A stretch of 64,000 nt of DNA, taken from Macrostomum lignano (taxonomy: Eukaryota). Below are positions 3,501 to 42,675 of this stretch, piece by piece (positions within the stretch are counted from its first letter, which is position 1; each line of letters begins with the position of its first letter). Both the position numbers and the translations under genes were made by a program. The notes beneath the pieces are model-generated. The model was not told the DNA's origin. It searched no databases and was given only the letters and a program-made list of their open reading frames with translations. Where the stretch lies: the NCBI GenBank assembly GCA_002269645.1, contig NIVC01001485.1, forward strand, positions 62,001-126,000, given 5' to 3'.

Positions 3501-3699
3501 ATGGCTTCCTCGGGGCCAGCAGGCTGCAAATCAGCTTGAATGTCTCCTTGCCACAGACACTGAGGAAGACAGCTCGCTTTTTGTCTTCGGACTCTATGTC
3601 GCTTGCAATGAAAGCTTGCTCCACTCTTTCCTTGTACTGCAGCCAGTCCTCATTTTCAGGCTCAAATGGACCGATGCTACACAGTAGGCCCGTGGCCAT
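502..3699 (-). pseudogene. gag-pol polyprotein with in-frame TAA inside the protease (2697-2695) and an in-frame deletion spanning RNase H end to integrase core (~1285)
   Basis: The two ORFs are in the same frame, 9 nt apart (LRNYGG*PVNVLGQ). DHKPL is fused directly to RLRRTFSQLGLP, so the integrase HHCC finger and first catalytic Asp are missing. Confidence 0.85.
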
Positions 3700-3717
3700 T
3701 AGTCACCTCGTCGCCAC

Positions 3718-7191: not shown

Positions 7192-9092
7192 GGCATTCTT
7201 TCGGATGACGATCACCTGAAAAGTGACGATCACCAATGTAAAAGTTCTGGGTAATTGAAATTGAAAGTAAGAAAGCGAGTCAAACATATTGTCCAGAAAT
7301 TAAAAAACCCAACATTGGGGCTATCAGTCATGAATCGTGTATTTTGTAGTAACCGCCACGTGTATTAAATCAATTTCAGATGGAACGATCGTCTTCCGAA
7401 ACTACAGCTTGGAAATTCTAGAAAAAAATTAGTGTCTCAAAGTTTAACATCTAGTGAACGTAAGTCAGTTTCGGAAGATGATCATTTTAATATGAAGGTA
7501 GCCCTGAAATGATCGCGTTCCGAAAGTACAGAGTTTTTATTGTCTTAGGAGCAGTAATCATTTCATTCAACAGACAGAAGTTCAAAGTTGAGGCCAAAGA
7601 GGCGCTCATCCAAAACCCGTGGAGCACCATCCAAGGGGTAGACGTGCTTTAAGTCCTGGAAGAACTCATGGACAAACTGTTTCATTTCTTTGTTACGGTG
7701 GGAGCAGTACATTAGCTCGACTAGGTATGAAGCGAAGTGTAGTGCACTAGTTCCACGCATGTTCTTAAATTTGGTTTTTGCAGTATCCCAAAAGCCCTCA
7801 ATGCGATTCGTGTGTACGTCTTTCTTCTTGCCATTTCGTAATTCGTTCAATAGTTGTCTTAAAGTGCTCTTTGTGGCAGACAACCCAGTGACTATAACCC
7901 ATGTGTTCCAAGTCAAGGTAAGCAGACCAGCCGTCGCTGAATACAGTCGTTCCGGGGAGAATGAACTTCTCAATTAAAGGTAGAAGAGTTTCTTTTGACC
8001 TGTTTTCAACAGGCCAAATGACAGTACGGCCATTGTGTCTGTTTGTCATGCCAAAAATCCAAATTTGTTGGCCCAGTTTCGCACCTCGGTTATATTTCAT
8101 CTTTCGGCCAAAGAGGGACTCATCTATTTCAACGATGTGTCCAACACCGCCAAGAGAGATCGTATCTCGACGTGTCTTGAACCATTCACACATTACGTCT
8201 CGAATGAAATGGCCCCATTGCACGGCTGCCTCCGCTTCAATGCCGTACATGGCGCGCAGTGAACTCTGGGTTATAATATGGATGCACCCCCCCTCAGTTT
8301 TGGAAGGCGATCATTCTTAATGTAATTTGTACATTGTAATGATCGTCAACCGATAGTACATGGCTTACCTTTGCAGAGTGTTCAGAAGATAACCAATGCA
8401 GTACCCAATGAGTTTAGAATTCTCGAAAAAAGTTCCCCTTCTAATGTAGACTCTTTTTTCATGTGCTCCAAATGGCGAACCAGCTCCCTTCTTTCACCGG
8501 AACACGACACCGTCTGTCGAATTATGGGCCTTGACAATGTTCATTGACAATGCACAAATAGGGCAGGGCATTGTTTCCGGAAGCAGTCCTTCTCTTTGAA
8601 GAAGGCCAATCTAGTTTTCAGCTGTAATAAAGCGCCATGACATGGGACACACCAGTTCCTTGATATGCTCCAGTGGCTTCAAATCAACAAACAAGCCGGC
8701 ACATTCAATTTTCCGTTCTTTGGCAGGTTTTGAGCATGCCATAGTGAGTGCTACTGAAATATGAGAAAGAAAAGCTATAGTTTCGGATCACAATCATTTG
8801 TATTCAAAAGTATCATTGAAATGATCGCATTCCGAAACTGATTATATACACATCCATGACAGAAATAATGCTATTGATGTTGCTGGTTTTAAATTGGAAA
8901 GTTTCTCTGTTTTTCTGTAGTTTCGGATCGCGATCCTTTCTATTCAAAACTTATATTGAAATGATCGCCTTCCGAAACTAATTATATAGTTGCCGTTTTA
9001 CCATGATTTCTACAGCACAGTATACCATTTTCATAGGTGATCGTCAACCAAAACTTGTAAGAAACAGAATGATCGTCATCCAAAAGAATGCC
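7192..9092 (-). mobile_element. Merlin (IS1016/ISXO2-like) DNA transposon with complete ends and disrupted transposase
   Basis: TIRs GGCATTCTTT(C/T)GGATGACGATCA. Exact 8-bp TSD GCCTAACC at 7184-7191 and 9093-9100. Transposase motifs VEIDESLF, YNRG, WIFG, SDGWSAY, H..HF, VHTNRIEGFW (ORFs 8250-7798 and 7973-7563, frameshifted). N-terminal exon from ATG 8742 has in-frame stops. Confidence 0.92.
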
Positions 9093-19760: not shown

Positions 19761-20700
19761 GCCCTCCCAGACCCTCAATTTCTGGGCCAACAGCCTCCCA
19801 GATCCTCAGTTGCTGGGTCACCAGCCTTCCAGATCCTCAGTTGCTGGGCCAGCCTTCCAGATCCTCAGTTGCTGGGCCACCAGCCTCCCAGATCCTCAGT
19901 TGCTGGGCCACCAGCCTCCCAGATCCTCAGTTGCTGGGCCAACAGCCTCCCAGATCCTCAGTTGCTGGGTCACCAGCCTTCCAGATCCTCAGTTGCTGGG
20001 CCAGCCTTCCAGATCCTCAGTTGCTGGGCCACCAGCCTCCCAGATCCTCAGTTGCTGGGCCACCAGCCTCCCAGATCCTCAGTTGCTGGGCCACCAGCCT
20101 CCCAGACCCTCAATTTCTGGGCCAACAGCCTCCCAGATCCTCAGTTGCTGGGTCACCAGCCTTCCAGATCCTCAGTTGCTGGGCCAGCCTTCCAGATCCT
20201 CAGTTGCTGGGCCACCAGCCTCCCAGATCCTCAGTTGCTGGGCCACCAGCCTCCCAGATCCTCAGTTGCTGGGCCAGCCTCCCAGATCCTCAGTTGCTGG
20301 GTCACCAGCCTCCCAGATCCTCAGTTGCTGGGCCACCAGCCTCCCAGATTCTCAGTTGCTGGGCCAGCCTCCCAGATCCCCAGTTGCTGGGCCACCAGCC
20401 TCCCAGATCCTCAGTTGCTGGGCCAGCCTCCCAGATTCTCAGTTGCTGGGCCAGCTTCCCAGATCCTCAGTTGCTGGACCAACCTTCCAGATCCTCAGTT
20501 GCTGGGCCAGCTTCCCAGATCCTCAGTTGCTGGGCCAGCCTCCCAGATCCTCAGTTGCTGGGCCAGCTTCCCAGATTCTCAGCTGCTGGGCCAGCCTCCC
20601 AGATCCTCAGTTGCTGTCCAAGCCTCCCAGCTCCTCAGTTGCTGTGTGCCACCCTCCAAGATCCTCTGTTTCTGGGCCAGCCTTTCAGATCCCCAAAAAT
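19761..20700. repeat. Minisatellite family A (CCTCCCAGATCCTCAGTTGCTGGGCCACCAG, ~25-31 bp), intergenic
   Basis: Tandem variable units between the RPUSD1 3' end and the SSB-like gene. Confidence 0.95.
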
Positions 20701-20830: not shown

Positions 20831-21475
20831 ATGCTCCTGTCGCCGCTATCTGCAGCTGTCAATCAGCTATCCCGTCGCGTAGGCGGCCAATCTGTTGTTT
20901 CCATGGCAACAGCTGTTCGCCTCCTGTGCAGCGGTTCAAAATCGGCCGCGGAGCAGTCGGAGCCAGAAGACCCAAGCTCGATTCCCGAGTCCAAGCAGAG
21001 CCCGTCTTCAAAAAAGTTTCGCTACAGTTTTCTTGGCGGCGATCACAACGAGATCTCCTTAGTTGGCACAGTTACCAAGGTGACAGAGAAGGAGCGAAAT
21101 AAAAGTACAGGCGCCGAGCCCTACTGCGTACTGAGCGTTGTAACGCTGCACCGTTACAAGGATCGCAATGGCCGATTCCACGTCATCAATAGCCATCATC
21201 GAGTGTCATCCTTCAACTCAAATATTATTAGAATTGCCCGGCTCACTAATCCAGGCGACAGAATCTTTGTGGTCGGCAGGTTGGAGTATTTCTTTGTTAA
21301 TCAACAACGCGTGGCCACTCTGACTCCAACTAGAATGGTGCCGATGCTGCCGAAGACGCTGAATCGAGCCCAGGACCTACTGTCGGCTAATGATTTGCCT
21401 GCAACTGATCAAGATGATGAAGATGGCTACGAGTATCAGTTTGATGCCGAACATAAGGCTGAGTCTGCCGTTTGA
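20831..21475 (+). CDS. Mitochondrial single-stranded DNA-binding protein-like (OB fold), intronless
   Basis: 214 aa with an Arg/Ser-rich N-terminal presequence-like segment. SSB-like pattern NEISLVGTV...T..RY.D..G.......HRV..F...GDRIFVVGRLEY and an acidic tail. Divergent from canonical SSBP1. Confidence 0.65.
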   Translation: MLLSPLSAAVNQLSRRVGGQSVVSMATAVRLLCSGSKSAAEQSEPEDPSSIPESKQSPSSKKFRYSFLGGDHNEISLVGTVTKVTEKERNKSTGAEPYCVLSVVTLHRYKDRNGRFHVINSHHRVSSFNSNIIRIARLTNPGDRIFVVGRLEYFFVNQQRVATLTPTRMVPMLPKTLNRAQDLLSANDLPATDQDDEDGYEYQFDAEHKAESAV

Positions 21476-23103: not shown

Positions 23104-24544
23104 ATGAACAAGCCTAAGCAATACGATTGGAAGGATAGTAATTTGGCCCTGTTTGGCTCCGACACTGAGCGGCAGGTTAAGAGTAAGATCTAAATAGTAG
23201 CTTTTATATCGTCTGTGTTTTTTAGTCTGATTCTAATTATATGCTTCTTTTCTATTTATTAATTTTGCAGAGGAATCCGCTGAGAAGGAGCCAGCGTGGA
23301 AGCCCGTTCTGGAAGCGCAGAAGCCTCAACTATATGTGTGGCGTATCGAGGTAAGTAATTTAATAGTATGCTTTCATATTATTTCCTTAAAATATCGTTT
23401 TATGCCATCGCCGTCCTAAGCTTAGCCTAAACTGCAATAATTGCCTTAACCTCATCGATAATCTCAATAGCCTAATCGATAATCTCCTTAGCCTGATCGA
23501 TAATCTCATTAACTTCATCGATAATCTCATTGGCCTCATCGATAATCTCATTAACCTCATCGAAAATCTCATTAGCCTCATCGATAATCTCCTTAGCCTG
23601 ATCGACAATCTCATTAGCCTCATCGATAATCTCCTTAGCCTGATCGATAATCTCATTAACCACATCGATAATCTCAATAGCCTAATCGATAATCTCCTTA
23701 GCCTGATCGATAATCTCATTAACCACATCGATAATCTCATTAGCCTCATCGATAATCTCCTTAGCCTGATCGATAATCTCATTAACCTCATCGATAATCT
23801 CAATAGCCTAATCGATAATCTCCTTAGCCTGATCGATAATCTCATTAGCCTCATTGATAATCTCCTTAGCCTGATCGATAATCTCATTAACCTCATCGAT
23901 AATCTCAATAGCCTAATCGATAATCTCCTTAGCCTGATCGATAATCTCAATAGCCTCATCGATAATCTCATTAGCCTCATTGATAATCTCAATAGCCTAA
24001 TCGATAATCTCCTTAGCCTGATCGATAATTGCCTTAATAACCTCTTTTATAATTGTTAAGGTCAAAGAACTCAGCACCAAACTCATATATGCATATATTG
24101 CAGAACTTCAAAGTGGTGGAATGGCCCAGAGATTTGTACGGCAAATTCTACAGTGGCGATTCTTACATCATCCTCAACGCCTACATGGAGGCTGACAAGC
24201 TCTGCTACGATGTGCACTTTTGGATTGGCAAAGAGAGCACGGCTGACGAGTATGGCACTGCCGCCTACAAGACTGTGGAGCTGGACACCCTGTTGGACGA
24301 TTTGCCTGTGCAGCACAGGTAAATAGTGTTTAGCTGTCTTAGCCGGCCTGAGTTGTCCCGATAAATTTGATTTACGATGGCCAGTGTGAGCTACTGATAG
24401 TGGCAGATTGAACTGTTGGGCTATAAACTCTGCCTGCTGTGTCTGGCTAGTAAATAAAGACAGACTGGCAGACACTAAGAGAGGACAGACAGACAGACAG
24501 ACACTAAAACAGGGCAGACAGACAGACAGACACAACAGACAGAC

Positions 24545-25699: not shown

Positions 25700-26703
25700 C
25701 CCAGGCAGACAGACACCCAGGCAGACAGACACCCAGGCAGACAGACACCCAGGCAGACATATCAACCGCCGTCAATTCATTGCAGACTGTCTGATGCCAC
25801 TGGCAAGCTGAATTTCGACTTGGTTTCCACGGATTCGCTGAGCAAAAGCAACATCACTGAGGATGTAAGCGTTTACTGCCTCCATGTTTCCTTCATAGCA
25901 ACAGTAACCATAGCAACTAAATTGACTTTGTCATTGCATCTCGCAGGACGTATTCATCATTGACAACGGTTTCGAAGTGTACGTCTACGTGGGAGAGAAT
26001 GCCTCAATGACTGAACGTCACAACGCTCTGGCCTACGCTCACGTTAGTGACTAGTCTCGATATATTGTACATATGTAGTGCACTCGTAATGCACAGCAGC
26101 CCTGTTTCCTTGCTATAACATTAAGGACTAGCAGTCAAGTGTAAAAATGTCCTAATTATTTGACACTGGTAGCAAATGTGCGCGGTACTATGAAGTTCAA
26201 ATTGGTTAGAAAGTTTTCCTTGAGAAGATTTGTTGAAACCAGTCGGGCAGAAGTCAGTATTGTGCCTGATAGGGAGGCTTGGAGGCTAGGAGACTCTGGG
26301 AGGCTGGCCTAGCAACTGACACTCTGGGAGGCTGGTGGCCCAGCAACTGACACTCTGGGAGGCTGGCTCAGCAACTGAGGATCTGGGAGCCTGGTGGCCC
26401 AGCAACTGAGGATATGGGAGGCTGGTGGCCCAGCAACTGAGGATCTGGTAGGCTGGCTCAGCAACTGAGGATCTGGGAGCCTGGTGGCCCAGCAACTGAG
26501 GATCGGGGGAATGAGTGGAGAATTTCTGCGCACGAGCCACTTTACAACAGACCCTTCATATCTTTGCACCTGTAACTGTAACCCATAATTAACTCATATT
26601 GCAGAATTACCTACGCGACAGCGTCAACCCGTTGCTACCGGTTACCGTGGTGACGCCGCAGGCCCCGGCCAAGACCAAGGCCGCCTTCAACGCCGTGTTT
26701 TAG
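23104..26703 (+). CDS. Three-domain gelsolin/severin-like actin-modulating protein (1-nt frameshift at ~24897)
   Basis: Exons 23104-23182, 23271-23350, 24104-24318, 24828-25187, 25273-25361, 25786-25864, 25947-26042 and 26605-26703 total 1097 nt, one short of 366 codons. Motifs [55 protein letters not shown] and DVFIID. Confidence 0.9.
23452..24030. repeat. 21-bp minisatellite (TCGATAATCTCATTAGCCTCA) in gelsolin intron 2
   Basis: Tandem units with 7-aa periodicity. Confidence 0.95.
24455..24790. repeat. (AGAC)n-type degenerate microsatellite in gelsolin intron 3
   Basis: Direct reading. Confidence 0.9.
25375..25760. repeat. (AGAC)n microsatellite in gelsolin intron 5
   Basis: Direct reading. 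Confidence 0.95.
26280..26510 (-). repeat. Minisatellite family A, inverted copy, in gelsolin intron 7
   Basis: Reverse complement of the 19761-20700 unit (CAGCAACTGAGGATCTGGGAGG). Confidence 0.9.
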
Positions 26704-27314: not shown

Positions 27315-27742
27315 CTGACTGACTGACTGACTGACTGACTGACTGACTGACTGACTGACTGACTGACTGACTGACTGACTGACTGACTGACTGACTGACT
27401 GACTGACTGACTGACTGACTGACTGACTGACTGACTGACTGACTGACTGACTGACTGACTGACTGACTGACTGACTGACTGACTGACTGACTGACTGACT
27501 GACTGACTGACTGACTGACTGACTGACTGACTGACTGACTGACTGACTGACTGACTGACTGACTGACTGACTGACTGACTGACTGACTGACTGACTGACT
27601 GACTGACTGACTGACTGACTGACTGACTGACTGACTGACTGACTGACTGACTGACTGACTGACTGACTGACTGATTTGATTGACTGATTTGATTGACTGA
27701 TTTAGTTGACTGATTTAGTTGATTTTGATTGATTTGATTGAT
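27315..27742. repeat. (GACT)n microsatellite with a degenerate TGATT tail
   Basis: About 360 bp of perfect GACT units. Confidence 0.97.
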
Positions 27743-27744
27743 TT

Positions 27745-30700
27745 AGAAGGATCTAGTGACATACTCAGTGAAGGATCTAGTGACATACTCAGTGTAGGAT
27801 CTAGTGACATACTCAGTGAAGGATCTAGTGACATACTTAGTGAAGGATCTAGTGACATACTTAGTCAAGGATCTAGTGACATACTTAGTGAATGATTTAG
27901 TGACGGGCTTAGTGAAGGATCTAATGACATACTCAGTGTAGGATCTAATGACATACTCAGTGAAGGATCTACATGTAATGACATACTTAGTGAAGGATCC
28001 AGTGACATACTTAGTGAAGGATCTAGTGACATAATCAGTGAAGGATCTAGTGACATAATCAGTGAAGGATCTAGTGACATAATCAGTGAAGGATCTAGTG
28101 ACATACTCAGTGAAGGATCTAGTGACATACTTAGTGAAGGATCTAATGACATACTCAGTGAAGGATCTAATGACATACTTAGTGAAGGATCCAGTGACAT
28201 ACTTAGTGAAGGATCTAGTGACATAATCAGTGAAGGATCTAGTGACATAATCAGTGAAGGATCTAGTGACATACTCAGTGAAGGATCTAGTGACATACTT
28301 AGTGAAGGATCTAGTGACATAATCAGTGAAGGATCTAGTGACATAATCAGTGAAGGATCTAGTGACATACTCAGTGAAGGATCTAGTGACATACTTAGTG
28401 AAGGATCTAGTGACATAATCAGTGAAGGATCTAGTGACATAATCAGTGAAGGATCTAGTGACATACTCAGTGAAGGATCTAGTGACATACTTAGTGAAGG
28501 ATCTAGTGACATACTTAGTGAAGGATCTAGTGACATACTCAGTGAAGGATCTAGTGACATACTCAGTGAAGGATCTAGTGACATACTTAGTGAAGGATCT
28601 AGTGACATAATCAGTGAAGGATCTAGTGACATAATCAGTGAAGGATCTAGTGACATACTCAGTGAAGGATCTAGTGACATACTTAGTGAAGGATCTAGTG
28701 ACATAATCAGTGAAGGATCTAGTGACATAATCAGTGAAGGATCTAGTGACATACTCAGTGAAGGATCTAGTGACATACTTAGTGAAGGATCTAGTGACAT
28801 ACTTAGTGAAGGATCTAGTGACATACTCAGTGAAGGATCTAATGACATACTTAGTGAAGGATCTAGTGACATACTCAGTGAAGGATCTAGTGACATACTC
28901 AGTGAAGGATCTAGTGACATACTTAGTGAAGGATCTAATGACATACTTAGTGAAGGATCTAATGACATACTTAGTGAAGGATCTAGTGACATACTCAGTG
29001 AAGGATCTAGTGACATAATCAGTGAAGGATCTAGTGACATACTCAGTGAAGGATCTAATGACATAATCAGTGAAGGATCTAGTGACATACTCAGTGAAGG
29101 ATCTAGTGACATACTTAGTGAAGGATCTAGTGACATAATCAGTGAAGGATCTAGTGACATAATCAGTGAAGGATCTAGTGACATAATCAGTGAAGGATCT
29201 AGTGACATAATCAGTGAAGGATCTAGTGACATACTCAGTGAAGGATCTAATGACATACTTAGTGAAGGATCTAATGACATACTTAGTGAAGGATCTAGTG
29301 ACATACTCAGTGAAGGATCTAGTGACATACTCAGTGAAGGATCTAATGACATACTCAGTGAAGGATCTAATGACATAATCAGTGAAGGATCTAGTGACAT
29401 ACTCAGTGAAGGATCTAATGACATACTCAGTGAAGGATCTAGTGACATAATCAGTGAAGGATCTAGTGACATACTCAGTGAAGGATTTAGTGACATAATC
29501 AGTGAAGGATCTAGTGACATACTCAGTGAAGGATCTAGTGACATACTCAGTGAAGGATCTAATGACATACTCAGTGAAGGATCTAGTGACATACTTAGTG
29601 AAGGATCTAGTGACATACTTAGTGAAGGATCTAGTGACATAATCAGTGAAGGATCTAGTGACATAATCAGTGAAGGATCTAGTGACATACTCAGTGAAGG
29701 ATCTAGTGACATACTTAGTGAAGGATCTAGTGACATAATCAGTGAAGGATCTAGTGACATAATCAGTGAAGGATCTAGTGACATACTCAGTGAAGGATCT
29801 AGTGACATACTTAGTGAAGGATCTAGTGACATACTTAGTGAAGGATCTAGTGACATACTCAGTGAAGGATCTAATGACATACTTAGTGAAGGATCTAGTG
29901 ACATACTCAGTGAAGGATCTAGTGACATACTCAGTGAAGGATCTAGTGACATACTTAGTGAAGGATCTAATGACATACTTAGTGAAGGATCTAATGACAT
30001 ACTTAGTGAAGGATCTAGTGACATACTCAGTGAAGGATCTAGTGACATAATCAGTGAAGGATCTAGTGACATACTCAGTGAAGGATCTAATGACATAATC
30101 AGTGAAGGATCTAGTGACATACTCAGTGAAGGATCTAGTGACATACTTAGTGAAGGATCTAGTGACATAATCAGTGAAGGATCTAGTGACATAATCAGTG
30201 AAGGATCTAGTGACATAATCAGTGAAGGATCTAGTGACATAATCAGTGAAGGATCTAGTGACATACTCAGTGAAGGATCTAATGACATACTTAGTGAAGG
30301 ATCTAATGACATACTTAGTGAAGGATCTAGTGACATACTCAGTGAAGGATCTAGTGACATACTCAGTGAAGGATCTAATGACATACTCAGTGAAGGATCT
30401 AGTGACATACTCAGTGAAGGATCTAATGACATACTTAGTGAAGGATCTAGTGACATACTCAGTGAAGGATCTAGTGACATACTCAGTGAAGGATCTAGTG
30501 ACATACTCAGTGAAGGATCTAGTGACATACTTAGTGAAGGATCTAATGACATACTCAGTGAAGGATCTAATGACATACTTAGTGAAGGATCTAGTGACAT
30601 ACTCAGTGAAGGATCTAGTGACATACTCAGTGAAGGATCTAGTGACATACTCAGTGAAGGATCTAATGACATACTTAGTGAAGGATCTAGTGACATACTC

Positions 30701-30745
30701 AGTGAAGGATCTAGTGACATACTCAGTGAAGGATCTAGTGACAGG
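27745..30745. repeat. 24-bp satellite array (ACATACTCAGTGAAGGATCTAGTG and variants), ~125 units
   Basis: Direct reading; 8-aa periodicity. Identical ORF calls occur 1032 bp apart (28734 and 29766). Confidence 0.97.
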
Positions 30746-31022
30746 CTTAGTGACTGTCAGACCCAGCGGCGCACATGAAGTAACGGTGCCCTCAAAGCCA
30801 GATACCACAGAAGCTCTTAGGTTAGAAAATTATGCAGTTTAATTTTCATCACGTCTGCTTGATCGAATCTTTCAGACCGGTTTTTAAAAACCAAGCAAAA
30901 AGTGGAGAAAACTAATTAACAAAACTGACCAGAAGCAAGCAATCAATAAATTTGCCGATTGCAGTATCGGTCAAAGCAACTGAAAGTTTCTTGTCCATTT
31001 GATTGAATCAACAGCACACAGA

Positions 31023-34000
31023 ATGGACCGCGGAATGCATCAATACCAGCAGCAGCAACAACCAAATCTGCAGCACAACCCTTACCATGGCCTTAGCAAC
31101 GGTCGTCAATATCAACAACAGGCGCCGCCGCCTCCAATCATTGGTGGCGGAGCTGGCGAGCATTTGTTCTTCTTTAAAAAGCGAGCAGAGCGACTTGATT
31201 GGCGCCGTCTAGCCGCTATCGATGTTGATCGAATTCAGCGCGACCTGGACTTTGCCGCCCTGCAGGAGCACCTGGCCGGGGTTACTTATTGCGATGCTGA
31301 GTCAGAATTTGCTCGCTGTAACGATGCTAATTTAGTAAAGTTATTTCGACTGGCTCAGCTAATGATTGAGTATCTGCTGCATTCGCAGGTTGGTATAGAT
31401 TGTTATCGAAATTGCTTTCTGTGTTATGATGCCGCGATACTGGTTGCTAGGGCCGGTTTATTCTTATAACACTGGTTGCTAGGGCAATCGACTGTTGTAA
31501 TACTGGTTGCTAGGGCCGGTTTATTCTTATAGCACTGGTTGCTAGGGCAATCGATTGTTGTAATACTGGTTTCTAGGGGCGGTTTATCCTATAATACTGG
31601 TTGCTAGGGGCGGTTCATTCTTGTAATACTGGTTGCTAGGGCAATCGATTATTGTAATATTGGTTGCTAGGAGCGGTTTATCCTATAATACTGGTTGCTA
31701 GGGCAATCGATTGTTCATTTTGCAATCCTGGTTGGTGGTTGCTAGGATGATTACTTGTTGTTATACTGGTGGCTATGGTGACCATCGTTATGCTACCGGT
31801 TGCTAGGGCGATTACTGTAGGTATATTGGTTGCTAGCCAAATTTTCCAACAAGTCTAGCACGAATTCTCGACTTAAATTTAGGCAATCATATGCCTCACG
31901 CACTACTGCCGCCCCGATAAAAAATACAGGAGTATCTGGCGCACACGCGCGGCCAGTTGGAGCGCCAGACGGCGGAGGCGCAGGCCGAAGCGCTGGCTTT
32001 GAAGCAGCGTCTGGCCGACAAGCAGCGGGAGGCCAACGATTTGAAGCGGGAATGTCACAAGAGAAAGAAATTATTGATCGCCCAGCAACAGCTGATGGAG
32101 GCTGGGCCGCAGTCCTATCAGCGCTGTCCCTATTGTCCGAAAGCGTTTCTTAACAATACCTTTCTGCGATCGCATATTAATAGGCGGCACGGAGGGGCCG
32201 AGTATCCGCCAACTGGGGCTGGCGCTTCGTCTGGTAGGGATCTGCAGGTATGTATGCTGGCTACTAGATGTCCTTGAACTTCCAGATCCCTATTCGGGGT
32301 ATCCTTCAACCTTTTTTATCTTCTGAACTCCCTGACCAGATTGTTATCTTTAGTGTCCTTGAGCTCCCATACCATATTCCTTAGTGTCCTTGAGCTCCCA
32401 TACCATATTCTTTAGTGTCCTTGAGCCCCCAGACCAGATTCTATCTTTAGTGTCCTTGATTGATTGAACTCCCTGACCAGATTCTTATCTTTAGTGTCCT
32501 TGAAACTCCCTGACCAGATTCTTATCTCTGGTGTCCTTGAACTCCCATACCAGATCCTTATCTTTAGTGTCCTTGAACTCCCTGACCAGATCCTTATCTT
32601 TAGTGTCCTTCAGCTCCTAGACCAGATCCTTATCTTTAGTGTCCTTCAGCTCCTAGACCAGATCCTTATCTTTAGTGTCCTTCAGCTCCTAGACCAGATC
32701 CTTATCTTTAGTGTCCTTCAGCTCCTAGACCAGATCCTTATCTTTAGTGTCCTTCAGCTCCTAGACCAGATCCTTATCTTTAGTGTCCTTCAGCTCCTAG
32801 ACCAGATCCTTATCTTTAGTGTCCTTCAGCTCCTAGACCAGATCCTTATCTTTAGTGTCCTTCAGCTCCTAGACCAGATCCTTATCTTTAGTGTCCTTCA
32901 GCTCCTAGACCAGATCCTTATCTTTAGTGTCCTTCAGCTCCTAGACCAGATCCTTATCTTTAGTGTCCTTCAGCTCCTAGACCAGATCCTTATCTTTAGT
33001 GTCCTTCAGCTCCTAGACCAGATCCTTATCTTTAGTGTCCTTCAGCTCCTAGACCAGATCCTTATCTTTAGTGTCCTTCAGCTCCTAGACCAGATCCTTA
33101 TCTTTAGTGTCCTTCAGCTCCTAGACCAGATCCTTATCTTTAGTGTCCTTCAGCTCCTAGACCAGATAGATCTTTATCTTAGATTTCCTTTAACATACCA
33201 GACTAGATTCTCATCTTAGGCGTCCTTGAGGTTCAATTTCTCGTCTCACTTCTATTAAAAAGAATTTTTATTAGCATCCTCTCCTTACAATGGCACCGTT
33301 CAGACCCGCGTTGACCTGCTGTCCCAGCTGACCCGGGAGGAGCTCCTGACTCGCCTAAGCCAGCTCGATGCCGCCGCTGCCGCCTCAGCCGGCGCTGCCG
33401 AGTCGCCCGGACGGCGTCAAAGACAACTGCAGCAACAACTGGCCGAGATGCAGGCCAAGCACGAGGCCGACTTGGCCAGACTGCGCGATTCGCACGAGCG
33501 TCAGCTACGTCAGCAGCAGCAGCAGGAGCAGCAGGAGCGCGAGCGTCAACAACTTCAACAGCAGGAGGCTAGGCGTCGTACAAATCTCGGCGAATTGCTC
33601 ATGGACGACGACGAGGACAACATCGGAGATGCCGATGATAAAGTGTCGGCTCGTCGGGCAGCGCCGGCCGCTGCCGCAGCTTCGGGCAGTCCAATGCCGG
33701 CCCGACAGCCGGAGGACGATCTGGCAGCTGTGTCGGCCCAGATGCGCCGGAATCTGGATCTGCACGCGAGTTCGCGAGAGTCTCTGCTAATGAATAGCAC
33801 TACTGAGAATAGCATGGCACAGGGCGTTGAGGCTATGCGGACCAGCGGCCTGCTGGCTCGGCTGAAAGGCGATCGCGGCATTGTTGAAGGCTTGAAAAGC
33901 GAATTGGCTCAGTTGCTTGAGGAACAGCTCGAGGAGCGGGGCATTGAGCCTAATACTACTCGAATTAGCAATCGGGTGCTCAATGAGAAACTTGCGATGC

Positions 34001-35516
34001 TGGCTCGTGAACGAGAGCAGGTGGCCTTCAAGTTTAAGAATTTTGAACAGCTGAGGCGACAGCACGCTGCATCGGTGAGAATGGCATTAGCTGCATGTTA
34101 CCGATATGTATCGATGGAATGTTTCTTTAGCATATCTTGACCTACTCCCGATATGTATCGATGGAATGTTTCTTTAGCATATCTTGACCTACTCCCGATA
34201 TGTATCGATAGAATGTTTCTTTAGCATATCTTGACCTACTCCCGATATGTATCGATAGAATGTTTCTTTAGCATATTTGGACTTACTCCCGATATGTATT
34301 GATAGAATGTTTCTTTAGCATATTTGGACCTACTCCCGATATGTATCGATAGAATGTTTCTTTAGCATATTTTGACCTACTCCCGATATGTATCGATAGA
34401 ATGTTTCTTTAGCATATCTTGACCTACTCCCGATATGTATTGATAGAATGTTTTCTTATCATAGCTTCGATGTGTATCTATAGAATGTTTTTTATCATCC
34501 ATCCATTGATTAATCGACAGGTGGACGCCAAAGCGCGTCAAATATTGAACGGCACAGCAGGTGGCGCCGGGGCCACCGCCAGCGGGACGGGCACCCAGTC
34601 GCTAACCAGACTGCTGCAGCAGCAACAACAGCAGCAGCAAATTCAGCGGCCAACAGTCCGCGTCACCCATCCCGAAGATGACGAAGCCTCAGAAGAAGAA
34701 GACTCTGAAGAAGATGATGAGGAAGAAACCGAAGATGAAGAAGAAGAAGAGATTGTCCCGAACAGCAAGCAGCAGGTGCCCGCGCAGGTGCACACTAACC
34801 CGGCGTCTGGCAACGCCGCAGCCGCTACTGCCATCGAAGAATTCGATTCGGACGAATACGAAGATGAAGACGAGGACGAGTACGAGGACGAGACCGCTAC
34901 TCGAACTGCCGACCATCGTCATCCTGAGACGGCGGTGTCGGCCACCGACGGATCTAGGCGACCTCCCGGAGTGCCGGACCTTCGACTTGGCGGCATTGGC
35001 GGCGGCGGCGGCGGCGGCGGCGCGGGCGTCAATCCCACTCCCAGTCCACGCCTTCCGCGCTCCCACCAACAACAGCAGCTGCAGCACCACCTGGCTCCCG
35101 ATTCGCCAGACGCTGTACACGCTTTCGACTCTCCCGATGGCGCTGTCGGCGGCGGCGGCGGCGCCGTTATTTCGCGGCATCCTCAGCAGCGCCTACCAGC
35201 GGAGGCGTCCTCTTCCTGGGACTCGCAGGGCGACGAGATCTCCGAGTTGAATGCCGTTACTAACGGCGGCGGAGGAGCTGCCGATCTCAACGATGAAGTC
35301 AACGACCTGCTGCAGAAGCTGGGTTCCTCTGGCAACGGTGGCGGCGGCGGCTTGAATGTACGCGGCTCGGCCCAGACCGACAACAGCAACACGTTGGACA
35401 CGTCGCAATGGGCCGTCACATCCAATGTGGTTAGCACTGTTAATCCCGGCGCTACAGGCCGATCGTTGGGCACTAATAAAAGTTCAGATATTGGCGAAGA
35501 ATCCTTCGATGACTAA
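31023..35516 (+). CDS. DZIP1: DAZ-interacting zinc finger protein 1 (Iguana), ciliary basal-body protein
   Basis: Exons 31023-31388, 31930-32247, 33304-34074 and 34521-35516 (2451 nt, in frame). Dzip-like N domain (F.FKKR.ERLDWRRLAAIDVD...KLFRLAQLMIEYLLHSQEYL), coiled coil, and C2H2 finger CPYCPKAF....FLRSHINRRH. Confidence 0.9.
31436..31838 (+). promoter_or_regulatory. Tandem array of RFX X-box-like motifs in DZIP1 intron 1
   Basis: About 13 degenerate ~30-bp units, each centred on GGTTGCTAGG; four read GTTGCTAGGGCAAT. Function is inferred. Confidence 0.5.
32330..33170. repeat. 36-bp minisatellite (CTTCAGCTCCTAGACCAGATCCTTATCTTTAGTGTC) in DZIP1 intron 2
   Basis: Near-perfect tandem units with 12-aa periodicity. 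Confidence 0.95.
34101..34470. repeat. 47-bp minisatellite in DZIP1 intron 3
   Basis: CGATATGTATCGATGGAATGTTTCTTTAGCATATCTTGACCTACTCC, ~8 copies. Confidence 0.95.
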
Positions 35517-37406: not shown

Positions 37407-40400
37407 ATGAAGAGCGGCTCGCCGCAATTTCGCTTCGGTCTGCTGTCGTTCAACAGCGGCGGCGGTGGCGGCGGCGGCGGTGCCCGACATCCGACTCTGT
37501 TTGCGTCGCGTTCATTTGTGTTATTATTCGCGGCTATTGGGCTTATGTGGCTCTACTGCTTCACCATGTCTAGCTGGGGCGCCAGTTCTGACCGGCAAGA
37601 CTCGGAAATATTGCGACAGCAACTGCTGGACCTATCGAAAAAGTGCGCCTGTTTTCCTCTTGAGGAAATGCCCCCCCATACTCCAAAGCCCCCCCCCCCC
37701 CCTACTCACCTGAAGAATTGTCCCCTACTCACCTGAGGAATTGCCCCCTACTCACCTGAAGAATTGTCCCCTACTCACCTGAGCAATTGCCCCCCTACCC
37801 ACCTGAGGAATCGCCCCCCTACCCACCTGAGAAATCGCCCCCCTACCCACCTGAGGAATCGCCCCCCCGCGCCCGCAGATACGTGAAGAGCCTTGCCAGC
37901 GAGACTGGTGAGGTAGTGGACGGGCCATATTCAGGCCGGCTGACCGGCTACGATTTAAAGAAGACGCTGGCCGTTATGCTGCACGACATGATGAGGCGGC
38001 TGGACCGGATTGAAAATCGGCTGTTTAGCGGCGCTGGCGGAGTTAACTGCAGCGGAAGCGATTCTCGGCTGCATGAGGCGAAGGTGAGTGCCTCTGCTTT
38101 GCTGTGCCAGCCTCCCAGATCCTCAGTTGCTGAGCCTCCATCCCGCATCTTCAGTTGCTAAGCCTCCATCCCAGATCCTCAGTTGCTAAGCCTCCATCCC
38201 AGATCCTCAGTTACTAAGCCTCCATCCCGGATCTTCAGTTGCCGAGCCTCCATCCCATATCTTTAGTGGCTGAGCCTCCATCCCAGATCCTCAGTTGCTA
38301 AGCCTCCATCCCAGATCCTCAGTTGCTGAGCCTCCATCCCAGATCCTCAGTTGCTAAGCCTCCATCCCAGATCCTCAGTTGCTAAGCCTCCATCCCATAT
38401 TTTTAGTGGCTGAGCCTCCATCCCGCATCTTCAGTTGCTAAGCCTCCATCCCAGATCCCCGGTTGCTGAGCCTCCATCCCGGATCTTCAGTTGCTGAGCC
38501 TCCATCCCGCATATTCAGTTGCTGAGCCTCCATCCCGCATATTCAGTTGCTGAGCCTCCATCCCGGATCTTCAGTTGCTGAGCCTCCATCCCGCATATTC
38601 AGTTGCTGAGCCTCCATCCCGCATATTCAGTTGCTGAGCCTCCATCCCGGATCTTCAGTTGCTAAGCCTCCATCCCGCATCTTGAGTTGCTAAGCCTCCA
38701 TTCCAGATCCCCAGTTGCTGAGCCTCCATCCCAGATTTCAGTTGCTGTCTGTCATTTGCTTCCACGCACTGAAAATGTCACCTGCTTTGCATTGCCCTAA
38801 TTGAAATTCGTTTCATCCCGCAGCTTAGAGACGCAGCAATGTCCCGACAGACACAGCCGCCGCCGCCGCCACCCATTCAGGTCCAGCAGCCGGCGTCATC
38901 TTCGCTAAGCGGCGCTGCCCCCGCCCCAGCCGCTTCTGACGAAGTTGATGCCAGCATGCTGCTTAGCGGCTACCAAGAGAACTGCGAAATTCCTTTAGAG
39001 AGTAAATTTGAATATCCAGACTGCCAGGCCAAGGTTGAATGGATGATGAAGCACTGGCGAGATGATCCGTGCTATGCCAGGTATCTGCATGCGTGCTTAT
39101 TTGTTTCATTGTAGGATTCATAAAAGTACATAAAAGTATAAGTATGAAAATATTTGATTAGATATTGAAAATCCTTGAGATTAGATATTGAAAATCCTTG
39201 AGATTAGATATTGAAAATCGTCAGATTTGATATTAATAGTCATAAGATTAGATATTGAAAATCACGAAATTAGGAATTGAAAATCGTAAGATTAGATATT
39301 GATAGTCATGAGATTAGATATAAAAAATCGCGAGATTAGATATTGGAAGTCGCGAGTTTAGATATTAAAAATCGCGAGATTAGATGTTCAAAAATCGCGA
39401 GATTAGATATTGAAAATCGCAAGATTAGATATTGAAAAGTCGCGAGATTATTGAAAAGTCGCGAGATTAGATATTGAAAAGTCGCGAGATTAGATATTGA
39501 AAAGTCGCGAGATTAGATATTGAAAGTCGCGAGACTAGATATTGAAAGTCGCGAGACTAGATATTAAAAATCGCGAGATTAGATATTGAAAAAAGCGAGA
39601 TTGGATATTGAAAGTTGCGAGATTAGATACTGAAAAAAAGTCGCGAGATTAGATATTGAAAAACGCGAGGTTAGATATTAAAACTCGCGAGATTAGATAT
39701 TGAAAATCGAGAGATTAGATATTAAAAAGCACGAGATTGGATAAGAAATGCCATGTTCCACATCAACCAATCGCAGACACGGAGTGGACGGCAGCGAGTG
39801 CAGCATGAAAATCTTTCTCAGCGAAGTAGAAGAATTCTGCCCGATTCTGCCATTCCGTCAGCATCTGCTCCGTCAGAACGAGAGCGTCGCCTGGGTCAAC
39901 CGGCGCCAGCAGCTAGACAATGGCGCCGTGGCTCGAGAGAGCGCCAGGTTGAGCCTGTTAGAGCAGCTGGCTGGCGCTCCCGGTCTTCGAGAGCGCGTCA
40001 ATCAGCGCTGGCAGTCGCTGGCCAGTGCGGCAGTCGAAGGCGGCTGGCCGGATCGTTGGCCGCGGCGTCGAGTCCTGGCCCACGTTGGCTATCTGAGCCA
40101 GCCGCAGCACTGGCCGCCTGCAGAGGCCGCTCAGTGGGCGGATCTTCTAGCCGGCGTCGGGCTGCTGGGACACCGGCTGACTGTCAGCATTGATGGTGTC
40201 GGCCTGCGTCGCCAGCTGTTGAAATTGAATTACGCCAAGACAGAGTGTCAGGGCAAGAGGGACTCGGTTATCACTCATCTGGTGACGGATCTGGTTGGCA
40301 TTTTGCAGGTGTGGTTGCCGTGTATGCTGATTGACACTAAAGCAGACAGACATACAATTAATACTCCAAGATAGTCGGGCTCTATGACTCTAAGACAGAC

Positions 40401-40859: not shown

Positions 40860-42675
40860 GGCACACAGACAGTCAGACAGGCACACAGACAGACAGACAG
40901 ACAGACACAGACACATTCAACCCGCCTCGCCACCGCCGCCAGGTCCGCTCCGTCCTGGGCAAAAGCTTCGCCAGGTTTGCCTGTCTCTATCGAATCTTAG
41001 CTCCGTTCGGCGTCGAGCCGAAGTTCAACGATCAATCCTTTTCGTCTAGCAACGAATTGAATACGCCAGTCAGCGGACTGGACCTCAGTCCGATGCAGTA
41101 CCTCAGCTGGTTGCCATTCACGCTGGAGAATTTCTATCTCGGCTTGGCCCTGCCGCCGCCTGCATTGCCAAATATGACAAACTTGCCTAGCAGAGTCGAA
41201 TTGTTCATATTCGGTTTCGGCAATTCCGTATGGAAAGACGCCGCATTCTATCTGGCCGAGTTGCGCAAGCATTTCCGCCGGATTCACACGGCTGTAAGTC
41301 CCGAACAGCACCCGGATGTGCCGGCCTATGTTGTCAATCACGGCTTGCTGAACTATACCCAGTACAGGGGCCTGCTTTTGTCTATGGTATCTAACGGCGG
41401 TGGCATCTTTGTCGGCCTGGGATTTCCCTACGAGCATCCGGCACCGTTGGAGGCCGCGTCTCTCGGACTGCCGTTTTTGAATCTTCGATTTAAACCGCCG
41501 CTAGACCGTACTAATTCGGATTACCTGCGAGAGATACCCGTTTCTAGGAAACTGCGCTCTCAGGTATTGATTTTCTGGCATTAAAGGATTTTCCAAACCA
41601 AGTTGCTAGGTCGCCCCCCCCCCTAGATTCTCAGTTGCTGGGCCACAGGCCTCCCAGATCCTCAGTTGCTGGGCCACCAGCCTCCCGGATCCTCAGTTGC
41701 TGGGCCACCAGCCTCCCAGATCCTCAGTTGCTGGGTCACCAGCCTCCCAGATCCTCAGTTGCTGGGTCACCAGCCTCCCGGATCCTCAGTTGCTGGGCCA
41801 CCAGCCTCCCAGATCCTCAGTTGCTGGGTCACCAGCCTCCCAGATCCTCAGTTGCTGGGTCAGCAGCCTCCCGGATCCTCAGTTGCTGGGCCAGCCTCCC
41901 AGATCCTTAGTTGCTGGGCCACCAGCCTCCCGGATCCTCAGTTGCTGGGCCAGCCTCCCAGATCCTCAGTTGCTGGGCCAGCCTTCTAAGTCTTCAGCAG
42001 TAGCCCACCAAAACGAACTCAACATGAATTGCTCAAAATCGCCCCCCGCTCGCCCAGGATGCCTATCTAGAGTCGCTAGGCGAGCCGGCCTCCTTCCTGG
42101 TGGACCTGGAGGCCAAACAGCTGATCCCAGCCACCCTGGCCCGGGCAGCCGCGGCAGCCGCCGCCGCCTCCGCCAACGTGAGCTCCAGCGTGCCAAAAGA
42201 TTTCACGCCGGCCGCCTATCTGGCCCGAGTTCGAGCCCTCTTCTCGGCGCCGTCTCTGTGCCGTGTGGCGCCACTCGACGATTTGTCAACTTCCAGCTGG
42301 GCCGCCGTCAGAAATTCCACCGACGTTGCCACTGCTGCCGCAGCCGCCGCCGCCGCCGCCGCAGCCTCGGCATACTCTGGCGGAGCTGATGTACTGTTCT
42401 ACTTGGGCGTCGAAGGCCGCTCATGCTCGGAGACCTGCCTATCCGCGTCTAAACGATCCGTATGCGCTCCGGATCAGATGCGGGTGATCAATAGGCGATT
42501 AGAACTGCAGGAGAGAGGCATCCGGTGTAAACGGATCCGATACGATAATAGCCTAGTATTCCCAGCAATCTCCAAGCCCGGACATTGTCATTTCTTGTCG
42601 CACGAGCGACTGTTCTCGTGCGACGAACGCTTGAACGGCTACAGCCGGCTGTGCCCGTGCAGGCGTCTTGCCTGA
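37407..42675 (+). CDS. MGAT5: Alpha-1,6-mannosylglycoprotein 6-beta-N-acetylglucosaminyltransferase V (GT18)
   Basis: Exons 37407-37642, 37879-38083, 38824-39080, 39777-40308, 40943-41563 and 42058-42675 (2469 nt, in frame). Type II TM anchor. Motifs [46 protein letters not shown]...LSEVE..CP, E..QW.DL, FG.EP.FN, GLGFPYE.PAPLEA and RLCPCR. Confidence 0.92.
37690..37870. repeat. ~23-27-bp C-rich minisatellite (CCCCTACTCACCTGAGGAATT) in MGAT5 intron 1
   Basis: Direct reading. Confidence 0.85.
38106..38745. repeat. Minisatellite family A variant (AGCCTCCATCCCAGATCCTCAGTTGCTG) in MGAT5 intron 2
   Basis: Shares the CCCAGATCCTCAGTTGCT core with 19761-20700. Confidence 0.9.
39160..39740. repeat. 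~21-bp degenerate minisatellite (GAGATTAGATATTGAAAATCGC) in MGAT5 intron 3
   Basis: Direct reading. Confidence 0.9.
40392..40915. repeat. (AGAC)n microsatellite in MGAT5 intron 4
   Basis: Direct reading. Confidence 0.95.
41620..41990. repeat. Minisatellite family A in MGAT5 intron 5
   Basis: Same units as 19761-20700. Confidence 0.93.

Follow-up and report, generated by a model that had tools for sequence, protein, structure and literature searches.

We lean towards reading the minisatellite in the first coding intron of the Macrostomum lignano DZIP1 homologue as an ordinary, still-evolving intronic repeat with an RFX-like core, in a genome saturated with minisatellites. The conserved 15-mer of its unit contains what would be a good RFX-type X-box half-site, and binding by RFX proteins in vitro is therefore quite plausible. 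Because the genome is packed with such repeats, a regulatory role of the array in DZIP1 is possible, yet unproven. The stretch of DNA analysed, here called the window, comprises 64 kb of the Mlig_3_7 assembly (contig NIVC01001485.1), and its features are collected in Table 1.

Table 1. Positions in the window of the DZIP1 array, its motifs and the exons and introns of the host gene.
Feature	Position	Strand	Remarks
Minisatellite, 13 head-to-tail units	31438..31854	+	30-32 bp each, unit 9 = 44 bp; TRF, manual unit cutting, wrap-around alignment, MAFFT
Conserved 15-nt block TACTGGTTGCTAGGG, head of each unit	31438..31838	+	Holds RFX-type half-site GTTGCTAGG
GGTTGCTAGG, exact copies	31442, 31474, 31505, 31537, 31599, 31631, 31662, 31693, 31737, 31798	+	
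B-unit near-X-box GTTGCT AG GGCAAT	31475..31488	+	14-mer repeated at 31538-31551, 31632-31645, 31694-31707
Unit-11 variant GTGGCT AT GGTGAC	31769..31782	+	PWM; comparison with paralogous copies
fam1 arrays			MGAT5 intron; RPUSD-mtSSB spacer; beside gelsolin-like gene
DZIP1 homologue, coding exon 1	31023..31388	+	ATG at 31023, phase 0, donor GTTGGT at 31389; translation, ORF list, Pfam, annotated CDS start
DZIP1 coding intron 1	31389..31929	+	541 nt, GT...AG; splice sites read from sequence
DZIP1 coding exon 2	31930..32247	+	End of Dzip-like_N and C2H2 zinc finger
DZIP1 coding intron 2	32248..33303	+	76% unrelated 31-bp and 36-bp minisatellites (32350-32459, 32475-33167)
DZIP1 coding exon 3	33304..34074	+	
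DZIP1 coding intron 3	34075..34520	+	>80% 47-bp minisatellite (34101-34467)
DZIP1 coding exon 4, ending at stop codon	34521..35516	+	Gene end per public annotation

The identity of the host gene, as named in the original prediction, was borne out. Its product carries a Dzip-like_N domain (PF13815, E=3.7e-32) that spans the junction of exons 1 and 2 and is followed by a single C2H2 finger (zf-C2H2 matches at 187-209), which is the domain order of the DZIP1/Iguana family, and it is 52-53% identical to trematode DZIP1L. The four-exon model translates to exactly the 816 amino acids of the annotated DZIP1 product, whose coordinates agree with ours and which is assigned PF13815 and PF25977. DZIP1 is a basal-body gene. 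Placement of the array in intron 1 is right in the sense of the first coding intron, any 5' UTR exons lying outside the model, and the array occupies 77% of that intron. We looked for an intron position shared with Clonorchis; the nearest Clonorchis intron lies ~5 codons upstream, and the position is therefore not demonstrably shared. No structured RNA was matched in the intron or the window by Rfam at gathering thresholds.

The predicted tandem array is present as 13 consecutive units, a head-to-tail arrangement with a unit length within the ~10-100 bp of minisatellites. TRF on 31437-31704 returned a period of 31 (8.5 copies, 74% matches) and a period of 63 (88%), the latter reflecting a higher-order repeat in which units 1-9 alternate between an A type (..GGGCCGGTTTATTCTTATAA) and a B type (..GGGCAATCGATTGTTGTAA); units 1-2 duplicate units 3-4 over 63 bp, with 2 differences between them. 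A deletion has fused sequence into unit 9, and units 10-13 are degenerate. Each unit consists of the conserved 15-mer followed by a variable AT-rich 16-mer spacer. In the MAFFT alignment of the units, 14/195 cells of the 15-nt block depart from the consensus (7%), the figure for the remaining 16 columns being 70/208 (34%), a strong contrast that pure neutrality does not predict and that we count against our own reading. Exact GGTTGCTAGG occurs ten times, always on the + strand and always within the array, with no copy elsewhere in the 64 kb; the remaining three of the 13 units have GGTTTCTAGG, GGTGGCTATGG and GGTTGCTAGC in its place, so that the description of every unit as containing the motif was slightly generous. 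The counts given for the extended forms were exact, with four GTTGCTAGGGCAAT sites (31475, 31538, 31632 and 31694) and one GGCTATGGTGAC variant (31771). So was the remark that the array is more degenerate than its neighbours: 18% of its cells are off consensus, compared with 2-10% in eleven other arrays. We also considered that the 5' splice-site region might have seeded the array, or that the intron flanks might conceal degenerate units, and dropped both ideas when local alignments of the two flanks to A and B units proved no better than those of shuffles (p=0.2-0.96).

How the array has behaved over time can be seen from three copies of the locus in the one assembly, paralogous copies that are a few percent diverged. 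The copy in the window has 13 units and the two others (L001 and L003), whose intron at the matching site measures 465 nt, have 11 each. The differences are whole-unit insertions and deletions, which makes the array a VNTR in the sense of copy number varying between copies. Between-copy substitutions number 6/150 in the core and 5/147 in the spacer (p=1.0), although with 11 changes in total the comparison has little power; the adjoining exon and the unique part of the intron show similarly few changes. By this underpowered test, purifying selection acting on the core among the paralogous copies was rejected as an explanation. Both the 13/11/11 turnover and a core that changes like its spacer speak for an ordinary minisatellite and against a maintained RFX cluster, the low power of the substitution test being itself a point on the other side. 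The 63-bp duplicate, the fused unit 9 and the differing copy numbers show that the array gains and loses whole units and unit pairs by replication slippage or unequal exchange, and its unit has two parts, the conserved 15-mer TACTGGTTGCTAGGG and an AT-rich spacer that diverges fast.

Tandem repeats make up 28.7% of the window, in 42 arrays, and in the M. lignano genome at large simple and tandem repeats account for 15% (PMC5730564). The three DZIP1 coding introns each consist of minisatellite to ~76-82%, and the repeat unit differs from intron to intron. Considering this repeat load, chance location of the DZIP1 array is likely, and we count the base rate in favour of the ordinary minisatellite. 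The window also holds an LTR retrotransposon, an IS1595-like transposase ORF and, upstream of DZIP1, a 3-kb repeat. X-box likeness is confined to two of the ~28 families in the window, and the only ciliary gene known there harbours one of them; this counts the other way. The second, fam1 (GTTGCTGGGCCAC), is a different 31-bp family that scores higher on our X-box matrix (14.9 bits) and contains 26 full X-box consensus matches; it is dispersed, with at least three arrays and a 28-bp variant in the window, in or near non-ciliary genes (Table 1).

Could a transposable element such as a Helitron or MITE with internal minisatellites have brought in the array, as one copy of a dispersed family? Helitron families consisting largely of minisatellites are documented (PMC12001565), fam1 is dispersed, and the window has its retrotransposon and transposase ORF. 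We nevertheless regard such delivery as very improbable, because neither terminal inverted repeats nor other element ends surround the array, the intron-1 flanks, which are unique sequence, are conserved among the three locus copies, and the remainder of the 64 kb contains no copy of the unit. The sole inverted repeat encountered is the internal CAATCGATTG palindrome.

RFX factors bind X-boxes (GTNRCC-N0-3-RGYAAC) and control ciliary genes. The most direct challenge to the ordinary-minisatellite reading is that the array forms a homotypic cluster of RFX sites, an intronic DZIP1 enhancer bound by ciliogenic RFX proteins whose strength would be set by the number of units. Its geometry would be 10-13 half-sites spaced ~31 bp apart, roughly three helical turns, with a weak second half present at four. 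We judge this unlikely on the sequence evidence, even though the likeness to known X-boxes is real. The 11-mer GGTTGCTAGGG in the array core recurs without a change as the strong half of the X-box GGTTGCTAGGGAAGC in the promoter of human DYX1C1 (DNAAF4). EMSA supershifts show RFX1 and RFX2 binding at that X-box, which the promoter needs for its activity (PMC5024701). With a position weight matrix built from 26 validated Drosophila X-boxes (52 half-sites), the B-unit site scores 12.6 bits (left half 8.8, right half 3.8). This equals the weakest site used to train the matrix, at the very bottom of the range of validated fly sites, and exceeds the 9.1 bits of DYX1C1 itself. The scan against shuffled units proposed with the original prediction came out in its favour, only 0.2% of shuffled 63-nt unit pairs reaching the B-unit score. 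This result, the identity with an RFX-bound human site and the far lower variability of the core than of the spacer are what an RFX cluster would lead one to expect, and all three count against an ordinary minisatellite.

The likeness is nevertheless that of one half-site. A single half-site, GTTGCY with the usual spacer bases, is found as GTTGCTAGG in 10/13 units and scores 8.8 bits, compared with 10.7 for the best half-site scored (GTTGCC). Two inverted consensus half-sites, as in a canonical dimeric X-box, are found in no unit. In the A units a second half-site is lacking (1.7 bits), and the array contains no match to the mammalian, fly or worm consensus (GTNRCC N0-3 RGYAAC, GYTRYY N1-3 RRHRAC and GTHNYY NN RRNAAC, respectively). 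The B units fail all three patterns because of their terminal T, and against GTTGCC..GGCAAC they have 2/12 mismatches. The earlier statement that these sites stand one base from the palindromic X-box GTTGCTAGGGCAAC is arithmetically right, but GTTGCTAGGGCAAC is only a quasi-palindrome, and the mismatched base is its outermost C, equivalent to G1 of a half-site, a base from which none of the 52 validated fly half-sites departs. We take the lack of full consensus matches and the T at this position as pointing to an ordinary minisatellite. RFX5 and RFX7 bind one half-site (PMC8287911), and the ciliogenic RFX1-3 favour palindromic sites (PMC8287911; PMC2375033), which argues against the cluster, as do the better-scoring X-box-like arrays at non-ciliary genes of the same window.

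Position is equivocal. Functional human X-boxes lie at -500 to +500 around the TSS by a robust definition and at -2300 to +1400 by a permissive one (PMC5838959), and the array, at +415 to +831 from the ATG, would fit if the TSS is near the ATG. This promoter-proximal placement is compatible with X-box positioning and counts against our reading; however, 39% of M. lignano genes are trans-spliced, as DZIP1 may be, and +415 is counted from the ATG and not from the TSS. The presumed promoter (30744-31022), which takes up the 280 bp from the 3-kb repeat to the ATG, contains no canonical X-box, just a half-site-like AGCAAC, and therefore offers DZIP1 no obvious alternative RFX site, a point in favour of the cluster. 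A double X-box at 26631-26655 was considered as a distal promoter site and set aside, since by eye it falls within the final coding exon of the gelsolin-like gene that lies upstream. Our literature search found no evidence for DZIP1 as a direct RFX target, and X-box presence alone does not predict RFX dependence (PMC2375033). Overall, the RFX-enhancer interpretation gains at the level of sequence, from the DYX1C1 half-site identity, the matrix score and the position, and loses as a dedicated ciliary-gene device, given the missing consensus matches, fam1 in or near non-ciliary genes and a core changing like its spacer. In the ordinary-minisatellite reading, the array would not be a purpose-built, copy-number-tuned DZIP1 enhancer, any effect on transcription would probably be incidental, and the X-box likeness may be a leftover of the seeding sequence or a trait of a wider class of X-box-core minisatellites unrelated to ciliary genes.

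Such a wider class might also be taken as the full explanation. On this view TGGTTGCTAGG, which is half or all of an X-box, would form the core of ~30-bp minisatellites that recur across taxa as a class, the DZIP1 array among them; some cause intrinsic to the repeat would keep the core, and the link to DZIP1 would be accidental. Candidate causes are a bound protein, RFX or other, that stalls replication and so leads to slippage, a misalignment-prone quasi-palindrome, or core-seeded short-tract conversion as in minisatellite "core" models. A scan of metagenome contigs for the GGTTGCTAGG-type 10-mer pattern gave at least 120 loci, which collapse to at least 62 distinct families of 27-37 bp with differing spacers, a raw count, obtained with one 10-mer, that is not comparable with a base rate. 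Since all families were selected for the 10-mer, only flank statistics are unbiased. Among the matches listed, a second half-site [CT]AAC follows the core at offset 0 in 6 families and at offset 1 in 4, against ~0.5 per other offset, so that 10 of the at least 62 families have a second RFX half-site at exact X-box spacing; a T precedes the core in 33/62, again among the matches listed. Clear X-box arrays were seen at four loci (L064, L016, L012 and L023) and X-box clusters at L020/L022. The contigs are not from M. lignano, and some carry animal genes with introns: core-sharing arrays lie in a Lon-protease intron and beside RPAP1 exons of other animals, which together with the fam1 sites indicates no specificity for cilia and favours an ordinary minisatellite, as does the failure of X-box presence to predict RFX dependence (PMC2375033). 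The same scan of viral contigs gave 1 match, too few for power.

Within the window, the DZIP1 unit and fam1 are both X-box-like and have GTTGCT(A)GGGCC alone in common, but this similarity is marginal (z about 3, not significant after ~22 comparisons) and gives no firm support to homology of the two units; moreover, the second half-site of fam1 is the most variable part of its unit. Distant common descent or horizontal transfer of the families might also underlie the cross-taxon pattern. For these reasons we consider a cross-taxon class with a repeat-intrinsic cause quite doubtful as the explanation of the DZIP1 array. We would give a similarly small chance to the broader proposition that TGGTTGCTAGG-core ~30-bp minisatellites recur in several animal phyla, their core often extended into an entire X-box (GTTGCTAGGCAAC or GTTGCTAGGGTAAC), with the DZIP1 array and fam1 as local members. 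If it were true, RFX binding or the X-box quasi-palindrome might seed and maintain TGGTTGCTAGG arrays, or might make them widespread RFX-bound regulatory or architectural elements. We found no literature report of X-box minisatellites as a known phenomenon.

Comparison with known systems places the ordinary-minisatellite reading in context. The INS VNTR and SLC6A4 STin2 are regulatory VNTRs or minisatellites with transcription-factor sites. MNS16A at TERT (PMC5438627) similarly combines a factor motif per unit, association with a gene and variable copy number. The regulatory VNTRs differ from the DZIP1 array in that their copy-number-dependent activity is known from reporter or association data, while the DZIP1 array is known from sequence alone. 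Jeffreys-type minisatellite families have unrelated spacers around a shared short core that is their least variable part. The DZIP1 array resembles them in its conserved common core amid differing spacers; their core is, however, G-rich and chi-like rather than an RFX-type half-site, and sharing across phyla is here inferred through a biased pattern search. The gypsy Su(Hw) insulator array, with 12 sites, likewise has evenly spaced conserved motifs and variable AT-rich spacers, but it resides in a mobile element; the DZIP1 array has no such context, and our data do not suggest an insulator role. C. elegans DAF-19 targets have more than one X-box per gene, for which tuning of target-gene expression has been proposed (PMC3245922). 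This precedent lends some support to an RFX cluster, although the worm genes described there have two or three distinct promoter sites and not a 13-unit intronic tandem repeat.

The outcome matters in several ways. Should RFX bind the array and the array drive DZIP1, control of a ciliary gene via a copy-number-variable repeat would be clearly exemplified, and M. lignano transgenesis permits a direct test of the array. If the cross-family X-box pattern survives controls, a conserved transcription-factor motif would be linked to minisatellite birth or persistence, and X-box scans in repeat-rich genomes would be heavily contaminated by repeats. If neither holds, the array is one further intronic minisatellite in a species whose tandem-repeat load is already documented.

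Lastly, we note how the units compare with ciliary X-boxes one by one. The array shares with these the DYX1C1 strong half GGTTGCTAGGG (PMC5024701) and a location near the start of a cilium/basal-body gene. Known functional X-boxes are single or paired, lie upstream of or at the TSS, and are usually palindromic and conserved between species, unlike the 13 intronic tandem copies, where A units lack the second half and B units have it disrupted at an invariant base. A resemblance to the X-box GGTTGCTATGGAAAC of human DCDC2 is seen in the unit-11 variant; its counterpart in the paralogous copies reads GTTGCT AT GGTGAT, and both versions, at 8.5 bits in the window and 6.2 bits in the paralogous copies, are one base short of the fly-type X-box GTTGCTATGGTGAC.

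The exons around the minisatellite belong to a DZIP1 homologue: Pfam Dzip-like_N matches across their junction (E=3.7e-32) and a C2H2 finger follows, the closest database relatives are trematode DZIP1L proteins (52-53% identity), and our gene model equals the annotated 816-aa product, so that the gene had been correctly named in the original prediction. Its placement of the array in intron 1 holds for the first coding intron, the numbering here counting coding exons; trans-splicing affects 38.8% of M. lignano genes (PMC5730564). The array itself was confirmed as described, with 13 units and TRF periods of 31 (74% matches) and 63 (88%). Four copies of GTTGCTAGGGCAAT and one of GGCTATGGTGAC were counted accurately, but the 10-mer GGTTGCTAGG, said to lie in each unit, is altered at one or two bases in three of them; the ten intact copies are all on the + strand and have no other occurrence in the 64-kb window. 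Three DZIP1 products are annotated in M. lignano (806, 816 and 806 aa), none of which was returned by a homologue search with the DZIP1 N-terminus. In Clonorchis sinensis (DF143023.1, 20184-24692) the nearest DZIP1L intron interrupts the gene ~5 codons before the point where intron 1 lies in M. lignano (fluke ..LLVEY / LLHSQNYL.., M. lignano ..LLHSQ / EYL..), and the gene spans 35 kb in the fluke versus 4.5 kb in the window.

Features of the window around and beyond the DZIP1 array
Feature	Position in window	Strand or orientation	Details
LTR-retrotransposon gag and pol ORFs	505-3702	-	RVT_1, RNase H, integrase, zinc knuckle
IS1595/ISXO2-like DDE transposase ORF	7801-8310	-	
fam1 array	19763-20679		spacer between pseudouridine-synthase gene (RPUSD) and mtSSB-like gene
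fam1 array	26305-26508	reverse	beside gelsolin-like gene
Upstream repeats	27315-30743		(CTGA)96, then 3-kb array, 125 copies of 24-bp unit GAAGGATCTAGTGACATACTCAGT
DZIP1 coding exons	31023-31388, 31930-32247, 33304-34074, 34521-35516		four-exon model = annotated 816-aa product
First coding intron of DZIP1	31389-31929		holds array, which occupies 77% of intron
DZIP1 array	31438-31854		13 tandem units, 30-32 bp, one of 44 bp (TRF and unit decomposition)
fam1 28-bp variant	38099-38747		
fam1 array	41625-41980		MGAT5 intron

Units 1-9 alternate between an A type (TACTGGTTGCTAGGGCCGGTTTATTCTTATAA) and a B type (CACTGGTTGCTAGGGCAATCGATTGTTGTAA), and units 10-13 are degenerate. Each unit is bipartite, a 15-column core (TACTGGTTGCTAGGG) being followed by 16 spacer columns, and variant cells, which are not independent, number 14/195 in the core and 70/208 in the spacer; unlike this two-part unit, the window's other arrays vary in few, scattered columns. 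Delivery of the array by a transposable element seems to us very improbable: neither inverted repeats nor element ends were found beside it, even though element ORFs do occur in the window (see table). No unit-like sequence was seen in the intron flanks, and no Rfam family matched. Many sequences in these repeats could be taken for factor motifs. The B units carry a perfect 10-bp palindrome, CAATCGATTG (31548-31557 and 31704-31713), and the arrays at 23446-24029 and 34101-34467 have ATCGATA or TATCGATA in each unit.

The RFX resemblance is real at the level of the half-site and weak at that of the full site, and the X-box likeness originally proposed stands only to that extent. No full consensus match (mammalian, Drosophila or C. 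elegans pattern) occurs in the array, and B units have 2/12 mismatches to GTTGCC..GGCAAC. On a half-site matrix built from 26 proximal X-boxes of dRFX-dependent genes (PMC2375033, Table 2), the B-unit site scores 12.6 bits, equal to the weakest training site (median 18.1 bits), against 1.7 bits for the A units. The B-unit site is broken at a base that all 52 training half-sites share. In the suggested comparison with shuffled units, 12.6 bits is attained by just 0.2% of shuffles of the 63-nt unit pair and the half-site score alone by 9.8%. The human DYX1C1 promoter X-box GGTTGCTAGGGAAGC, which shares GGTTGCTAGGG with the core, is bound by RFX1 and RFX2 in EMSA supershifts and required for promoter activity (PMC5024701), though it scores only 9.1 bits on the fly matrix, and RFX5 and RFX7 bind one half-site (PMC8287911). 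By analogy, it is therefore plausible that an RFX protein would bind the core in vitro.

That such binding would make the array an RFX enhancer of DZIP1, as its motif content might suggest, we nevertheless consider unlikely, and we lean modestly towards a neutral intronic minisatellite. The first consideration is repeat load. The M. lignano genome contains 15% simple and tandem repeats (PMC5730564), and 42 TRF arrays (score at least 100) make up 28.7% of the window. In DZIP1, each of the three coding introns consists mostly of minisatellite, and their units are unrelated to one another, so that in this genome such a repeat is to be expected there by chance. The 24-bp-unit array upstream, also found in the paralogous copies, ends ~280 bp before the ATG, leaving very little unique promoter sequence.

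Secondly, X-box likeness is not specific to the ciliary gene. Of the window's arrays, 34 have units of 12 nt or more, and X-box likeness among them is confined to the DZIP1 array and to fam1, a different 31-bp family (CCTCCCAGATCCTCAGTTGCTGGGCCACCAG). The latter, which lies at non-ciliary genes, is the better of the two, with 26 full matches to the mammalian consensus GTNRCC N0-3 RGYAAC (GTTGCTGGGCCAC, 14.9 bits), and its unit varies most in the second half-site (CCAC). Outside these arrays, a near-perfect X-box, GTTTCCATGGCAAC (20897-20910; 13/14 positions of GTTGCCATGGCAAC; by our own estimate ~0.01 such sites expected per window), lies at the 5' end of the single-exon mtSSB-like ORF (Pfam SSB), overlapping an in-frame ATG, and a second match, GTTACCAAGGTGAC (21071-21084), lies 175 bp further downstream, within the coding sequence. 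Two overlapping matches, GTTGCTACCGGTTAC and GTTACCGTGGTGAC (26631-26655), fall by eye within the apparent last coding exon of the gelsolin-like gene upstream of DZIP1.

Thirdly, the locus has paralogues. The sequenced line carries duplicated chromosomes (PMC5730564), and besides the window's own contig (NIVC01001485.1 in GCA_002269645.1, recovered at 100% identity over 27407-52675) the assembly holds two further DZIP1-MGAT5-RPL35A copies, L001 (NIVC01003742.1) and L003 (NIVC01001519.1), alike in gene order and minisatellite set but differing in array lengths (DZIP1 span 5.2 kb in both, 4.5 kb in the window; MGAT5 6.8 and 6.75 kb versus 5.3 kb). Both have 11 units in a 465-nt intron, compared with which the window copy shows additional units and one deletion fusing units. 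Substitutions over ten clearly paired units number 6/150 in the core and 5/147 in the spacer (p=1.0, a weak test with 11 changes in all). These comparisons indicate turnover, and they reveal no constraint on the core beyond that on the spacer.

A purely neutral model leaves the strong conservation of the core within the array, and a flank signal seen across taxa, unexplained, which motivates the rival readings. The latter signal comes from metagenome contigs scanned for pairs of GGTTGCTAGG separated by 19-23 nt; at least 120 loci match, and those listed are not from M. lignano. Among the matches listed, simple repeats of 8 or 16 bp account for about a quarter, and the remainder are arrays of 27-37-bp units in at least 62 distinct families with unrelated spacers; some lie in animal genes with introns (one in a Lon-protease intron, one adjoining RPAP1 exons). 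As all families were picked by the 10-mer, only their flanks are informative. Raw abundance is not comparable to a base rate. In the 62 families among the matches listed, [CT]AAC, which completes a second RFX half-site, stands at offset 0 after the core in six and at offset 1 in four, compared with ~0.5 per offset at 2-16, and T precedes the core in 33/62. Clean tandem arrays of complete X-boxes are found in L064, L016, L012 and L023, and a literature search for such X-box-core arrays found no description. A repeat-intrinsic or cross-taxon class of X-box-core minisatellites might account for these flanks, although we hold it to be doubtful, a little more so than the enhancer. In the same four loci and in L107 and L114, on contigs of several unrelated samples, GTTGCTAGGCAAC, GTTGCTAGGGTAAC and GTTGCTAGGTAAC recur as complete X-boxes with periods of ~29-33 bp, and L020 and L022 contain dense canonical X-box clusters (GTTACCATGGCAAC, GTTGCCATGG) adjoining TGACGTCA-like palindromes.
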